A model generated the notes under the pieces. That model searched no databases. It was not told the origin of the DNA and saw only the letters and a list, made by a program, of their open reading frames with translations. A program made the position numbers and the translations under genes. Below are positions 14,830 to 60,982 of a stretch of DNA of 64,000 nt, one piece after another (position 1 is the first letter of the stretch; the number at the start of each line of letters is the position of its first letter). The stretch is from the sequence record PV112478.1. The stretch is one strand, 5' to 3'.

Positions 14830-15039
14830 GGTAGATCACCTTTTTGACGATTAGTTTATTCATAAAAACAGCATAAAGAGAGGGTCTTTCGACCCTCTCT
14901 CGTACTGACTTATCGTCAAAAGGATCTCAGTGTTTAGCTCATAAATGACTTATCGCACATCATCCTTTTCATGTTAAGGTCGCCACCGAAACATGTTTAT
15001 TCTCGGCTATACGAGTTAGCTTAATTTCCATATTTTTAA

Positions 15040-15575
15040 TACCCGATCCCTTCTACGTTGGAGAAATGGATCGAATAGGGTGACGCCCCCGGACATTTTT
15101 GCCGGCTCCTTGCACCTCTTTCGCCGGAATCCCCGGCTGAGGTCTATGGTCTATGGCCGCCTATTTTCGCTCTAAGGCGTAGGCCGCCTAAAATGACAGG
15201 CGTCATAATTAGTACCCCTCGGCCGATTCCGCGGCGCGTTTAACCGGCGGGTCGCCGAAGTCTTTGTCTCACGAGAGTTACCAATAAGTTATTGCTTATT
15301 GGACAAATCATTCGGATACGATTCCGAACTCCCTTCCTACCGAGCCTCTACTACCGAGCAGGAGTCGAACCTGCACTCTCTGTAAACAATATCACTTGAC
15401 TAGAGCAGTATTGTAAAGGTTACGTGGACTTTAAAAGTGTAGAATGGGTATCAGTTAATTTGTTGCGGCCGCATACCGGTAACTGACTTCTTCTACTAGC
15501 GCCACCACTGACTCCGGTGTCTCGCCTAGTGGCGTTGTGCGACCCATTAACTCGCACTATCTCTTTTAAGTCCAA
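15040..15575 (-). ncRNA. Candidate structured non-coding RNA(s) downstream of the tRNA cluster
   Basis: No ORF. Long stem 15426-15437/15563-15573 enclosing several hairpins, an orphan T-arm at 15358-15374 and a GC-rich 15040-15290 segment. Confidence 0.4.
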
Positions 15576-15578
15576 CTT

Positions 15579-15686
15579 TGGTTGATAGGTACCGAATCGA
15601 ACGGCTATCTCAGGCTCCCATGTTAAGGCGCCCCTCGTATGAGAGGGGGCCTAATGCCCGCGCTTTACCTTTAAGCTAGCCTATCA
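15579..15686 (-). ncRNA. tRNA-like RNA with 40-nt hairpin-containing anticodon loop, CCA end
   Basis: Acceptor TGATAGG/CCTATCA-A-CCA, D arm GCTT/AAGC, stem CGGGC/GCCTG and T loop TTCGATT. Confidence 0.7.
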
Positions 15687-15939
15687 TTGAATAGGTTCCC
15701 TAGCACTCAATGAGTATCATCTACACCAGCAGCGCCCGGTGTTTAGCCGAGATGCAATTATGCTTAAATGGGTCGTATTTAACGGCTCATTTATTCGTCG
15801 ATGATTTACGTAGGGATAACAAGGAGACATCCCCCTCAGCATGCCGAGGTCAACTTTTGCCTTAGGTCAAGATTAACTCTCCGCAACATTAAGTCGCCTG
15901 GTTAACCCCTACCTTTAGTCTAAGCAAGATGTCATTATT

Positions 15940-16029
15940 TGGCAGAGAGTGAGAGATTCGAACTCTCGGTACCCTTTCGGATACACTCCCTTAGCAGGGG
16001 AGCGACTTAAACCGCTCATCCAACTCTCT
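15940..16029 (-). tRNA. tRNA-Ser(GCU)
   Basis: Cloverleaf, CTCCC-CTGCTAA-GGGAG, long variable arm, G73, CCA. Confidence 0.93.
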
Positions 16030-20309: not shown

Positions 20310-20485
20310 TAGCGCGACCTATCTAAGAATAAGATTGGAAGTTTTATTTTATAATCTAGTGCTCTACCGGCTGAGCTATCTGCCTCCAAGAAACACTCTA
20401 TGAATGTGTCCAGGTAGGCAGAGCGGAATTCGAATCCGCGACCTCTAGAATTCTTTCCGTAAAAGAAAGAAAGTTCAGTCCGCTA
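20310..20485 (-). ncRNA. Circularly permuted tRNA mimic B (YrlA/Y-RNA-like)
   Basis: Core 20355-20449 in the order T arm (GCGGA-TTCGAAT-TCCGC), closed acceptor (TCTGCCT/AGGCAGA), D arm (GCTC/GAGC), closed by TCTAG/CTAGA. Possible outer bulged helix TAGCGGAC/GTCGCGCTA. Confidence 0.7.
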
Positions 20486-20565
20486 TTTTACTGTCTACTC
20501 TTTATCTTTAAGCGTGTGAGGCGATAAGATAAAGTTAACACTAACCATCCGAGTAGCATTATGGG

Positions 20566-20659
20566 TGCATTGATGACTGCGTCTACCAATTCCGCCATTC
20601 TCCCATAGTTTGGTGGGAGAAGAAAGAGTCGAACTTCCAGTGGGGTCATCACACCTGCA
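20566..20659 (-). ncRNA. Circularly permuted tRNA mimic A (YrlA/Y-RNA-like)
   Basis: GATGAC...GGAAG-TTCGACT-CTTTC-TTCTCCCA-CCAAACTA-TGGGAGAA-TG-GCG-GAATTGGTAGA-CGC-A-GTCATC. Confidence 0.7.
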
Positions 20660-20740
20660 ACACGGACTAACAATAAAGATAAGGTTGGCCTCAATCTTTA
20701 TTATCAATGGGCACTCGTGAGAATACCCATTACTAACACA

Positions 20741-49917: not shown

Positions 49918-51819
49918 TTAACGACCGCCGAAACCGTAAGAAGAACGGGCACGAGAACGGAAACCTGCACCGTCGTAGCCGTTGGATTCGTAACGAGAAG
50001 TATAACCACGACGGCTGGTACGGCCATCCTGAGTAATACCATCAGCGGTAACCACCATGCCTGCTGCAGACAGTGCGCGGGTCAGGCCGAACAGCCAGTT
50101 GGCGTTCACTTCGATGACGTCTGCACGGTCGGTGATCTGATACTGACCGCCGGTGTAGTCTTCGATGATTTTTTCCATCTGGTCCATACGGACTTGCAGA
50201 TCGATCGAATCGTCGTTCAGGCAACGATCGTAATCAGCAACCACCTGCGGAGATTTCAGACCGAAGTTGGTCAGAATTTCGTAGTAACCGATTTCACGCA
50301 GGTCACGTTTATGACCCTGTTCGTCGATCCAAGTGCCCAGCAGTTGCGGCATGTCGCGGATGATACCCACGTCGTACAGATCTGAGGTGTTCATGATGGT
50401 AGAGAAACGATCGCCGGAGATGTTGTCGGCGGCTTCGATCAGCACGTCAACAGCTTCTTTACGGTTCGGGTTCGTTTCGTCGCACGCATCAACCAGCAGC
50501 TGCAGCAGCGGGGTGTTGATGGAAGAACGCGGGATCTGGATCTGAACGATCTGGCTGTTCTCACGAACAACGTTAGCCACCAGGCCGGCCCATTCGTCGT
50601 CGTTCAGAACTTCCGGGAGTTTTTCAAACTCGCCTTTCAGTTCGTAGGTCAGAGCTTCAGCGGTACGCAGCGCGCCTTTGGTGTTCAGCGGACGCAGACC
50701 CTGAATCAGAGCCGGTTCAGTCATCAGTGCAGATACCTGTGCCAGAGAGAACATCAGGTATTCAGGAATCGCCACGCATTTCAGATCGCTGATCACCAGA
50801 GCGATACCGTAGATACGGGTATCGAAGTCTTCCGCTTTCTTTTTGCGCAGTGCAAAGAAACTGTTGGACTGCTCTTCTTCGCCTTTGTAATACAGGTCGA
50901 CGTGGGAGATCAGACCGGCCAGCTGAGTGGACTCACGCTCGGACAATACGTTAACAATACCGCCACGACGTTCGTCACGCGGCGCCACCATCAGATCAAC
51001 AACGATATCGGCGCGATGCGGCATTTCGGTGATGTCGTCAGCAACGTCACCTTGATGGAATGCGATGTTCGCCAGCAGATCGTTATTTTTCAGGTCCAGC
51101 GCCGCAATGCTGAACTCGTTAGTGGTCAGGATCGCGTTAACGGAATAGATGATCTGGTTGATCACCGCAGAAGCGATACGCTCCAGTTCTGCGTCGGTCG
51201 GTTTGTCCAGGAAGATCGGGGACGCCGCCAGATGCTGAACCTGGCCGGTGAATGCCGGGTTGGACAGGGCAATCAGATCGTCCAGGGACTCTTTATAGCC
51301 GATCGCTTCGTACTGGTCGTTAGCGGTGGTAGTGAAACGCACGGTGTGGTCACGACCAACCTGCACGGCCTGTTTCGGCATCACGGTGTTACCCACGAAG
51401 ATCACGGTAGACGCGAAGATCATGCCGTTGTCTTTCAGACGGGCAGCGATGACCGCAGCGTCCAGTTTCATTTGGGTATCTTTGCCTGTTGCCGGCGTTA
51501 CCGTCCATTCCAGGACACCGTTCAGGCTGATCGCGGCGCTGTGCTGTTTCTGGATTTCTTTGGTCAGTTCGACGAATTTGGCTACGTCGCCTGCCGCAGA
51601 GTTCAGGGACAGTACTGGCGCATCTTTACGGAAGTTATAGGATGAAGTCACTTTTTTCTCCTGACGGGAATCATTTTCGTTGGAACGGGTGTAAAAGGAA
51701 CGGCGGCGTGCAGAGGATTCTTCCTGGCGACCTTCGTCGCGAGAAGTTTCCTGCGCACCAGTTTCTACTGCTGCTTCTTCTGCTTTGTTTTTGTTGTGAT
51801 CGTCATCACGTAAGGCCAT
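49918..51819 (-). CDS. chmA: Chimallin, major phage nuclear shell protein
   Basis: 633 aa, directly upstream of the nvRNAP beta-prime gene and near the DNA polymerase. Strongest host-optimal codon bias in the window; disordered N- and C-terminal segments; AGGAG RBS. Confidence 0.8.
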   Translation of the reverse strand: MALRDDDHNKNKAEEAAVETGAQETSRDEGRQEESSARRRSFYTRSNENDSRQEKKVTSSYNFRKDAPVLSLNSAAGDVAKFVELTKEIQKQHSAAISLNGVLEWTVTPATGKDTQMKLDAAVIAARLKDNGMIFASTVIFVGNTVMPKQAVQVGRDHTVRFTTTANDQYEAIGYKESLDDLIALSNPAFTGQVQHLAASPIFLDKPTDAELERIASAVINQIIYSVNAILTTNEFSIAALDLKNNDLLANIAFHQGDVADDITEMPHRADIVVDLMVAPRDERRGGIVNVLSERESTQLAGLISHVDLYYKGEEEQSNSFFALRKKKAEDFDTRIYGIALVISDLKCVAIPEYLMFSLAQVSALMTEPALIQGLRPLNTKGALRTAEALTYELKGEFEKLPEVLNDDEWAGLVANVVRENSQIVQIQIPRSSINTPLLQLLVDACDETNPNRKEAVDVLIEAADNISGDRFSTIMNTSDLYDVGIIRDMPQLLGTWIDEQGHKRDLREIGYYEILTNFGLKSPQVVADYDRCLNDDSIDLQVRMDQMEKIIEDYTGGQYQITDRADVIEVNANWLFGLTRALSAAGMVVTADGITQDGRTSRRGYTSRYESNGYDGAGFRSRARSSYGFGGR

Positions 51820-60013: not shown

Positions 60014-60982
60014 CTAGAGTTCCATCCCGTCGCCCTGAACATCGCCACGGATAAAGTTTTGTGCAGCCTTGGACTTCTTATCGCGTGCAGCGCGACGTTG
60101 TTCGTAATCGTCAAACGTTTGGCGAAGTTCCATTAAGATCTCATTCAGCCCATCTGTATGAATGACAAAATAAAGTGAATCTTCCCCTGTACGTTTACGG
60201 GTGCCGAACGTGTTATAGTCCGCTGGGATAGTACCGGCTACCGGCTTGTTGTCGCCGTAGAGTTCCGCAACTGAAATAGGTGCGTTAACGCTCACCGCGT
60301 CATCACGATCCTGGAAGACGTCAAGGAGACCGAGTTCCGGACTTACGCCTGCACCAAGAACGGGTTTCGCCCAGGTCAGTACGTCCGCAGAATCCAGTCC
60401 GTGATGTTTCCCGGAATAAAGATCCAGAACGGCGCGGATGGTAGCGATCATGATCGCATCGACTTCGGCGTTGCGCAGGTTGTTCTCATTGCTCTCGTAA
60501 CAGACGTTACAGAACTGATTGTTCTTGATCGCAATGTTACGCAGCGACGAAATGGTCTTCATGGTGTTTTCGGTAGTATTACCCGATTCTGTCGAACCGA
60601 CTAAAAAGACCAGCACCGCTTTATTCTGCGCATAAAGCGCTTCGATCAGTTTCGGACCAATGACCGAACCGCTGCCGCCGGAGGCGGAGAAGATCAGAAT
60701 GTTGAGATCGGACGGCTTCAGCTTAAAGAGAATGTCGCTGATGCTTCGGTTCGTGACGTCGTAGTTGGTTTTACGGATTTTCCCTGCGCCGTCTACGCCC
60801 TCGAGGAAATACCATTTGTCAGGGTCTTGAACAGACCGCTCGGAAACGTTGGAACGGCTACCGTCAACATACGCTTCTTTGACGTTAGCGAGCTCAGAAA
60901 GATCAGTACGCATGAGTTTAGTGAGGATGTCGATACCCGCACCACCTGCGCCGTAAATAGTTACTGTGTTATTCGATGACAT
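60014..60982 (-). CDS. phuZ: PhuZ phage tubulin
   Basis: YGAGGAG, GVDGAGK and tubulin signature SASGGSGS; short C-terminal tail. Confidence 0.93.
   Translation of the reverse strand: MSSNNTVTIYGAGGAGIDILTKLMRTDLSELANVKEAYVDGSRSNVSERSVQDPDKWYFLEGVDGAGKIRKTNYDVTNRSISDILFKLKPSDLNILIFSASGGSGSVIGPKLIEALYAQNKAVLVFLVGSTESGNTTENTMKTISSLRNIAIKNNQFCNVCYESNENNLRNAEVDAIMIATIRAVLDLYSGKHHGLDSADVLTWAKPVLGAGVSPELGLLDVFQDRDDAVSVNAPISVAELYGDNKPVAGTIPADYNTFGTRKRTGEDSLYFVIHTDGLNEILMELRQTFDDYEQRRAARDKKSKAAQNFIRGDVQGDGMEL

Follow-up and report, generated by a model that had tools for sequence, protein, structure and literature searches.

Two conserved tRNA-like genes with hairpin-bearing anticodon loops in a lineage of Klebsiella jumbo phages

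What is the role of a transfer RNA (tRNA) gene whose 7-nucleotide (nt) anticodon loop has given way to a long and structured one? The question is raised by el108, a 108-nt element encoded on the minus strand of the last 64 kilobases (kb) of the Klebsiella phage LPKP23 record PV112478.1 (300,747 base pairs, bp), with which the surroundings of el108 are 100% identical; this 64-kb stretch of DNA is hereafter called the window. El108 occupies the distal end of the tRNA cluster of the phage: the last canonical tRNA gene (Ser) lies 253 nt upstream on the same strand, and a terminator follows. The same 108 nt are annotated as 'tRNA-OTHER' in the GenBank record of phage vB_kp_MJ359, as is el97, a second gene of like design, and our literature searches found no description of the el108 element. 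An earlier note, made from the letters of the window, had read el108 as a CCA-bearing tRNA body whose 40-nt loop holds a hairpin, and both its coordinates and its loop sequence proved exact on reading and folding. Here we show that el108 is maintained throughout its phage lineage together with el97, its paralogue, and that structured modules form an array beyond the tRNA genes, up to a terminator near 14880, in which el108 comes closest to a tRNA; the paralogue and the array are both new beyond the earlier note. We argue, tentatively, that el108 may act without decoding.

A cloverleaf with a structured anticodon loop

The minimum-energy fold of el108 is exactly the cloverleaf read from its sequence, inner hairpin included (Table 1). 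The D loop carries the landmarks A14, G18, G19 and A21, and the canonical tertiary partners are all present (U8, A14, G18, G19, A21, a U54/A58-type T loop and A15/U48). G26 precedes the 5-bp anticodon stem CGGGC/GCCUG, and the variable loop is the 4-nt AGAU. The earlier description of arms and CCA as intact thus holds as regards the presence of the cloverleaf arms and the CCA, and requires amendment in two details: an extra nucleotide separates the acceptor from U8 and the D stem, and an A.A mismatch takes the place of the outermost T-stem pair, 49-65. The body has the features of a cloverleaf tRNA save for these two departures. The 7-nt anticodon loop with U33 and a purine at position 37 is lacking; its place is taken by 40 nt in the order AUU, a 10-bp hairpin (AGGCCCCCUC-UCAUAC-GAGGGG(C)GCCU) and a tail, UAACAUGGGA, that repeats the CAU(G) of the hairpin loop. 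This hairpin is unique in the window (0.01 occurrences expected) and in IMG/VR is confined to the same phages, so a repeated or mobile element was rejected as its origin. A pseudoknot of loop and tail, pairing (U/C)CAU(A/G) with CAUGG, was likewise set aside, since a linker of 4 nt would have to span a 10-bp stem, which is sterically doubtful, and nothing equivalent exists in el97; both hairpin-loop changes seen in phage FBKp24 raise the loop-tail complementarity, which we keep as an idea only.

With introns disallowed, ARAGORN made no call at el108, and the Rfam tRNA model RF00005 (gathering threshold 29 bits) had no match at 15579-15686 even at an expectation value (E) of up to 10. Scans against Rfam at gathering thresholds and at E of up to 10 were empty at el108, which argues against a known RNA family. 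In intron mode at default thresholds, ARAGORN called el108 as tRNA-Pro(tgg) with a 33-nt intron. As a control, the window was resampled 30 times under a first-order Markov model and searched with the same intron settings; none of the 30 resampled windows gave a call, ruling out a chance cloverleaf.

Conservation in the lineage and a paralogue of the same design

Among 50,697 phage records searched with blastn, el108 was found only in 13 records of Klebsiella jumbo phages, FBKp24 being counted twice as MW394391.1 and NC_061421.1, which are the same genome. The close relatives of LPKP23 are vB_kp_MJ359, KpXa_1, KpSz_1, KpZh_1, KpLz_1_41 and KpLz-2_45 (Siatvirus), and the more distant ones vB_KpM_FBKp24 (Maaswegvirus) and Centimanus. 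El108 is 100% identical in 10 of the records and 97.2% identical in FBKp24 (two records) and Centimanus, and both el108 and el97 are present in 13 of 13. The pair is also carried by two independent environmental contigs, the 10.5-kb IMG/VR contig L011 and the metagenome contig L052; two further IMG/VR matches duplicate phage records that are part of the count above.

Between LPKP23 and FBKp24, the flanking TAXI-like gene is 83% identical, orf113 within the cluster 77% identical and the 253-nt spacer upstream of el108 unalignable, while canonical tRNAs, where present, are 95-100% identical; el108 retains 105 of its 108 positions (as it does in Centimanus) and el97 100 of 101. Two of the three el108 differences lie in the hairpin loop, where UCAUAC becomes CCAUGC in the FBKp24 type, and the third turns an anticodon-stem G.U into G-C, by a change in the 3' strand in FBKp24, Centimanus and L052. 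Contig L052 adds an A to G change at the already mismatched position 49. No variant breaks a pair, and the tail is invariant. Within the 40-nt loop, two positions have changed where about 8 would be expected at a neutral divergence of about 20% (binomial P ~0.008). By these comparisons, body and insert alike are under purifying selection. The earlier note had named degeneration of the arms in relatives as the mark of a pseudogene; arms and insert proved to be conserved in every relative. Ordinary tRNAs, meanwhile, come and go in this lineage: relatives differ in which of those for Ser, Asp, Gly, Gln, Tyr, Arg and Met they have lost or replaced, with Ser and Asp missing from Centimanus, Gly from FBKp24, and Gln, Tyr and Arg from KpLz-2_45. 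Conservation upstream of el108 ends about 45 nt before its first nucleotide and takes in a small leader hairpin (Table 1), which in FBKp24 reads ACCC-ACU-GGGU, a form that differs by one compensatory pair.

An allele without the insert, for which a search of relatives had been proposed, was found neither in the 50,697 phage records (blastn), nor in IMG/VR (searched with the T arm and acceptor, with the body allowing a gap of 20-50 or 45-75 nt, and with the hairpin), nor in two scans of JGI metagenome contigs. The matches with a gap of 20-50 nt were unrelated canonical tRNAs (Met, Asn, Pro and others) with the same D arm, and the canonical tRNA-Asn(GTT) of three contigs (L046, L047 and L049) matches el108 over the entire acceptor stem and the D arm but lacks the extra C. 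On this likeness, the el108 chassis looks borrowed from an ordinary phage tRNA and fitted with a different anticodon arm. A search for distant homologues with an el108 covariance model was negative at 13 phage loci that encode a TAXI-like protein 65-76% identical.

El97, which lies between tRNA-Gly and tRNA-Asp, has a loop made of AUC, a 6-bp hairpin (GGCGGC-CACUGC-GCCGCC) and a 9-nt tail, CACUGCUUA, so that in both genes the tail echoes a motif of the hairpin loop, CAU(G) in the case of el108 and CACUGC in that of el97. Its Rfam tRNA score exceeds the RF00005 gathering threshold. A covariance model built from el108 alone returns el97 as its best non-self match (42.5 bits, E 5e-9), with the two hairpins aligned together, and reports none of the nine canonical tRNAs of the window at E of up to 10. 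In a joint alignment, 98.5% of cells are paired over five helices, with 11 pairs changed on both sides; of the 6 pairs that the hairpins share, 4 differ in both partners; sliding the partners by 1-3 columns as a control leaves 40-49% of cells paired. Because the alignment was fitted to the model and represents essentially one duplication event, these figures speak for a shared architecture and not for many independent events. The two genes also have in common U1-A72, G2-C71, U4-A69, A73-CCA, an extra nucleotide after position 7 and a weak 49-65 pair. El97 is thus a paralogue of el108. Furthermore, in Centimanus the el97 pair 49-65 has gone from G.A to A-U, the G.A of the extra layer has become G-C and the 54/58 pair of the T loop is swapped, creating an arrangement of an 8-bp acceptor and a 5-bp T stem; these compensatory changes show that el97 is under structural constraint.

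RNA libraries offer a glimpse of expression. Two wastewater metatranscriptome runs contain most of the sequence words of el108, and only about 10% of those of a 2.5-kb region. Assembled contigs cover 15542-15680 in one run (X18) and 15483-15660 in the other (X30), with 0 mismatches, no gap and the insert included. No spliced joint of el108 or el97 was found in the contigs of four RNA libraries, contigs being an assembly product that drops rare forms. Protein-coding stretches at 17.6-20.4 kb are almost uncovered in the RNA-library contigs, which argues against plain carry-over of DNA. Since depth is about 4-8, contigs extend past the CCA and rare forms are dropped, the observation of unspliced and not of spliced RNA is weak.

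What the modified arm may do

Our preferred reading, held with a confidence that stops a little short of even, is that el108 is a functional and maintained tRNA-like RNA that does not decode, with the hairpin and tail as its working part, as a decoy or an adaptor. It draws on the acceptor-end identity and the odd core that el108 and el97 share, on inserts that are as conserved as the bodies, on el97, which no simple excision converts into a decoding tRNA, and on RNA seen only in unspliced form. Among the alternatives listed in the earlier note, a stable tRNA-like RNA or decoy is the one with the best fit.

Under such a model, el108 would be transcribed together with the tRNA cluster, fold as an L-shaped tRNA core and be trimmed in the manner of a tRNA, by RNase P at U1 and with the encoded CCA as its 3' end, which would confer tRNA-like stability. 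The rigid GC hairpin and the conserved 10-nt single strand, occupying the place of the anticodon loop, would leave no codon reading. The modified arm on its tRNA chassis would then be the working part, most likely capturing or diverting a tRNA-binding factor as a decoy or adaptor; candidate targets are a defence nuclease or toxin of the host that attacks tRNAs, and an RNA-repair enzyme of the phage. Phage tRNA clusters are now viewed as counter-measures to host nucleases and toxins that attack tRNAs. LPKP23 encodes homologues of chimallin and of phage tubulin (Table 1), consistent with a published account in which FBKp24 is a jumbo phage that forms a nucleus (bioRxiv 10.1101/2021.03.02.433402). 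The tRNA-like RNA repertoire thus belongs to a nucleus-forming phage, and the RNAs must exit the shell before host enzymes can process them.

Several known systems resemble el108 in part. The T4 species 1/2 RNAs (rnaC and rnaD) are small, stable and encoded at the distal end of a phage tRNA cluster, a layout shared by el108, which is tRNA-like, co-oriented and distal; in rnaC, a canonical T arm is accompanied by a closing stem that resembles an acceptor. However, there is no sequence similarity, the T4 RNAs being absent from the blastn matches of el108, and the T4 folds have no full cloverleaf, expanded anticodon loop or CCA-ended 7-bp acceptor; el108 is a much more complete tRNA. YrlA, a bacterial Y RNA (RF02553) without a decoding role, imitates the tRNA elbow of D and T arms and so engages tRNA-binding proteins, a likeness to el108 if the latter is indeed non-decoding. 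In YrlA, however, a loop closes the acceptor and the Ro-binding stem extends from the 'anticodon' side, whereas el108 has free 5' and 3' ends with CCA, a closed and expanded anticodon arm and no match to RF02553. The topology of el108 and el97 is that of the engineered 'tRNA scaffold' that Ponchon and Dardel are said to have described in 2007, in which a structured RNA replaces the anticodon loop and is reportedly processed and stabilised as a tRNA; that scaffold is artificial, and by analogy only might the phage hairpin be regarded as an active payload. Finally, 'enigmatic introns' have been reported in tRNA genes of Lak megaphages (Devoto et al. 2019). Like el108, these are overlong phage tRNA-like genes flagged only under eukaryotic or intron settings of tRNA finders, with an insert in the anticodon region that is conserved between genomes and no known splicing mechanism, and el108 fits that description, as a descriptive class, in being found as a tRNA body only if an anticodon insert is allowed and in conserving the insert. 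The Lak genes belong to another phage lineage and host, and some have alleles with and without the insert, whereas none without it was found for el108; el108, unlike the Lak genes, has a short insert of GC hairpin and tail, a paralogue of the same design and additional non-canonical features in its body.

A conserved pair of non-decoding look-alikes would amount to RNA decoys or adaptors of a new kind, with a tRNA as chassis; should the pair prove to be spliced, these would be the first protein-spliced tRNAs of a bacterial virus. El108 and el97 are kept throughout a lineage of nucleus-forming jumbo phages in which ordinary tRNAs are dispensable, and either answer bears on the function of the T4-type species 1/2 RNAs and on the natural substrate of the bacterial and phage RNA 2'-phosphotransferase Tpt1/KptA. 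El108 is short, discrete and present in cultured phages (LPKP23 and FBKp24), and hence directly testable.

Several observations weigh against a non-decoding decoy or adaptor. A search for an antisense target in the 300,747-bp LPKP23 genome gave a single 12-mer match, about the number expected by chance and in sense orientation, and brought up no target RNA; the complement of the tail was not found elsewhere in the window. The el108 loop is without a match in 28 gigabases of E. coli genomes, which also speaks against host mimicry. The RNA contigs, being of low depth and extending beyond both ends of el108, may derive from a precursor or from DNA carry-over. The family is narrow, with three sequence variants, so covariation within el108 itself is minimal. 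Most pertinently, excision of 33 nt gives the neat loop AUUGGGA, similar to the UUUGGGA of a real phage tRNA-Pro (rV5); ARAGORN calls no other tRNA-Pro in the phage; and the phage encodes Tpt1/KptA, which belongs to a tRNA splicing and repair pathway.

These last points lead to the main rival, which we consider unlikely: el108 would be an intron-containing pre-tRNA-Pro(UGG), from which two cuts in the expanded loop by a protein endonuclease of host or phage, healing and sealing by an RNA-repair-type ligase and removal of the 2'-phosphate by Tpt1/KptA would produce a 75-nt decoding tRNA. The excision that yields AUUGGGA had been foreseen in the earlier note and coincides with the ARAGORN intron-mode call. 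The resulting loop has G37 and A38, A73 is the Pro discriminator, the CCA is encoded, and Pro(UGG) is a usual member of the tRNA sets of T4-type phages. Tpt1 catalyses the final step of tRNA splicing in fungi and plants, and the LPKP23 protein is full-length (Pfam E 2e-43, PHROG E 8e-57); its gene adjoins one for an HD phosphohydrolase and four small open reading frames (ORFs) without family matches, and genes for salvage of nicotinamide adenine dinucleotide (NAD) lie elsewhere in the genome (NAMPT-like, NadR, PnuC and Prs). Unexplained 'introns' in the tRNAs of huge phages, as reported by Devoto et al. (2019), lend further plausibility.

The Pro-like loop on which this rival turns is obtainable, but it is not the only one. 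Keeping 2-3 nt from the 5' side of the loop gives AUUGGGA, and keeping 4-6 nt gives the Leu-UAG-like AUUAGGA. As the loop starts with A-U, U33 comes automatically and a purine at 37 is the sole further condition, so the fit to Pro is weak evidence. The tRNA-Pro of rV5 has C1-G72, whereas el108 has U1-A72 and an additional nucleotide at the 7/8 junction; G72 is an identity element for the E. coli prolyl-tRNA synthetase. El97, built alike, yields no normal anticodon loop, for every join of k nt from the 5' side with 7-k nt from the 3' side places a pyrimidine at 37, and in FBKp24 and KpLz_1_41 the U at the second position of its loop is replaced by C. Conservation of the insert equals that of the would-be exons. 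Demand for the tRNA is a weak argument too, CCA accounting for 15% of the Pro codons of the phage and CCG for 41%.

In line with the earlier note, which judged it far too short to self-splice, the insert cannot behave as a group I intron: it is 33 nt with one hairpin and has no match to an Rfam intron family at E of up to 10. Group I introns do offer a bacterial precedent for inserts in tRNA anticodon loops, as in the cyanobacterial tRNA-Leu(UAA), and are self-splicing, over 200 nt in length and equipped with a P1-P9 core. Archaeal and eukaryotic pre-tRNA introns likewise interrupt the anticodon loop of an otherwise complete tRNA; el108 differs in that inspection of its sequence and folds revealed no bulge-helix-bulge (two 3-nt bulges, 4 bp apart). 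Beyond the anticodon stem there is instead a 3 x 10 nt asymmetric internal loop, followed by the 10-bp hairpin with its single bulged C. The junction called by ARAGORN is 34/35, and a 7-nt loop results only from excision at 33/34-34/35 (the Pro reading) or 36/37-38 (the Leu-like one), not at the canonical 37/38. Bacterial hosts are not known to have a tRNA splicing pathway of the archaeal or eukaryotic type. The earlier suggestion of a protein-spliced or ligated intron gains the phage Tpt1/KptA gene. The RNA-library contigs seen over el108 are unspliced, and the 59 ORFs scanned, about one sixth of the genome, gave no match to the EndA, RtcB or RNA-ligase Pfam families. Moreover, KptA is common in jumbo phages, where it is a predicted tRNA-repair enzyme (PMC9503650). 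That el108, and perhaps el97, is matured during infection by protein-catalysed splicing with a double cut, a healing and sealing ligase and Tpt1/KptA is, in our estimation, distinctly improbable. If true, the bacterial world would have its first tRNA intron system that does not self-splice, and the bacterial and phage Tpt1 a natural substrate.

More doubtful still is the notion that el108 is a tRNA-shaped domain of a long transcript, comprising the tRNA cluster and about 1.2 kb of modules up to the terminator near 14880, and works within that transcript or as its processing signal. The ORF-free stretch 14880-15940 is packed with conserved helices that show compensatory changes, RNA-library contigs span both borders of el108, and the leader hairpin is conserved along with it. 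Conversely, gains and losses of modules respect tRNA-type borders exactly (a 160-nt insertion or deletion follows the el108 CCA, and contig L052 has a CCA-ended module), el108 stays constant while its neighbours differ between phages, and the encoded A73-CCA with a standard RNase P context points to excision as a unit. Finally, a dead tRNA gene with a palindromic insertion in its anticodon loop, conserved through close phage kinship alone, would explain why el108 cannot decode as it stands, why standard tRNA finders reject it and why all known copies fall within one phage lineage, yet it is very improbable given 97% conservation at the level of working tRNAs against genes that differ by 17-23% and unalignable spacers, changes that disrupt no pair, retention of el108 and el97 in every genome while real tRNAs disappear, compensatory changes in a second gene of the same design and a hairpin repeated neither in the window nor in IMG/VR.

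Neighbouring tRNA-like modules and genomic setting

The functional, non-decoding RNA that we favour for el108 is flanked by further structured elements, whose coordinates are collected in Table 1 with those of el108 itself.

Table 1. Features of el108, its paralogue and the surrounding phage genome. Positions are those of the window unless another record is named.
Feature	Position	Strand	Details and basis
el108, whole tRNA-like gene, 108 nt	15579..15686	minus	RNA nt 1 = 15686, nt 108 = 15579; sequence reading, fold, ARAGORN intron mode
Acceptor 5' strand UGAUAGG, U1-A72 first pair	15680..15686	minus	pairs with CCUAUCA, 7 bp
Extra C between acceptor and U8 A9	15679	minus	
D arm, stem GCUU/AAGC, loop AAAGGUA	15662..15676	minus	reading, fold; invariant across relatives
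Anticodon stem 5' strand CGGGC	15656..15660	minus	
40-nt loop in place of 7-nt anticodon loop	15616..15655	minus	reading, fold
GC-rich hairpin within loop	15626..15652	minus	10 bp, one bulged C, 6-nt loop UCAUAC
Single-stranded 10-nt 3' tail UAACAUGGGA	15616..15625	minus	invariant in all copies
Anticodon stem 3' strand GCCUG	15611..15615	minus	
T arm	15590..15606	minus	A.A mismatch, G.U, 3 GC pairs, loop UUCGAUU
Acceptor 3' strand CCUAUCA, discriminator A73, genome-encoded CCA	15579..15589	minus	
Leader hairpin ACUC-AUU-GAGU, ~20 nt upstream of el108	15705..15715	minus	alignment
el97, tRNA-like gene, 30-nt anticodon loop	16202..16303	minus	Rfam tRNA 38.9 bits; ARAGORN intron mode; el108 covariance model
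160-nt element	15418-15578	minus	begins exactly after el108 CCA; 12-bp closing stem GGACUUAAAAG / CUUUUAAAGUCC, three hairpins
Mini tRNA-like element	15372-15440	minus	acceptor UACUGCU/GGUAGUA, T arm GCAGG-UUCGACU-CCUGC
~480-nt ORF-free region, strong terminator at end	14880-15375	minus	helices with compensatory changes, seven phages and contigs
Recurring module	15823-15935; L018 7771-7926, L020 2795-3060, others	minus (15823-15935)	AAUGACA(U/C)C start, G(A/G)UGUC(U/A)CC end
Closed-acceptor 'permuted' tRNA-like domains, two in tandem	20328-20455, 20575-20660	minus	second region, 20.2-20.7 kb
Chimallin (phage nucleus shell) homologue	49918-51819	minus	
PhuZ-like phage tubulin homologue	60014-60982	minus	
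Tpt1/KptA gene, outside the window	LPKP23 record 95675-96244 (L055 45675-46244)		

The 160-nt element folds as a large cloverleaf-like four-way junction and is present in the LPKP23-type phages and L011 and absent from FBKp24, Centimanus and L052. The mini tRNA-like element has no normal D or anticodon arm, and its acceptor pairs covary in FBKp24 and Centimanus. In the ORF-free region at 14880-15375, where no Rfam family matched, GOLLD and ROOL included, one helix reads UUCGGA/UCCGAA, UUCAGG/CCUGAA or UUUGGG/CCCAAA around a T-loop-like loop, and another is an 8-bp stem with a conserved CAAUAA loop; within this region, L052 has an extra CCA-ended tRNA-like module inserted. The recurring module is found in the Klebsiella phage and, in multiple copies, in Erwinia-phage relatives, and combines a hairpin that precedes the 3' end, and resembles a T arm in the Erwinia copies only, with a large variable insert.

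Insert-bearing tRNA-like genes occur in other viruses as well. In contigs of the Erwinia phage phiEaH2 type (L018 8358-8476 and L026 8359-8478), a 119-nt tRNA-like gene directly after tRNA-Ser(GCT) has normal acceptor, D and T arms, and about 16 unpaired nt and a long GC hairpin replace the anticodon arm. The Erwinia-phage relatives have other insert-bearing tRNA-like genes in the same cluster, and such calls were also made in 7 of 151 unrelated viral contigs.

The two closed-acceptor domains each run from the T arm and acceptor 3' strand (UUCUCCC-A-CCA and UCUGCCU-A-CC) through 6 or 27 nt to the complementary acceptor 5' strand and the D arm. The one at 20328-20455 scores 37.6 bits against the tRNA-like part of the Rfam YrlA model, short of the threshold of 69, and no Ro/TROVE gene was seen near 20328-20660. 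At 20413-20496, ARAGORN calls a 'tRNA-Stop(tta)', which has been described for FBKp24 as a 'suppressor tRNA'. In one wastewater RNA-seq library, a 195-nt contig covers 20417-20594 (178 nt, minus strand) without mismatch at a depth of about 95, some 30-fold above the depth of about 3 in the el108 area, and ends at 20417, where an additional A leads into adapter sequence. These features suggest that 20417-20594 gives rise to an abundant stable RNA with a defined 3' end.

LPKP23 also encodes a Tad3-like Thoeris inhibitor domain and an HD_4 (ppGpp-hydrolase-like) protein mislabelled 'relA' by Prokka. In the tRNA cluster of different relatives, HNH homing-endonuclease genes occupy three differing positions (L004 3102-3563, L005 2766-3221 and L052 1100-1555), each adjoining missing or truncated tRNA genes; that of L052 stands just upstream of el108, after a truncated tRNA 5' half.

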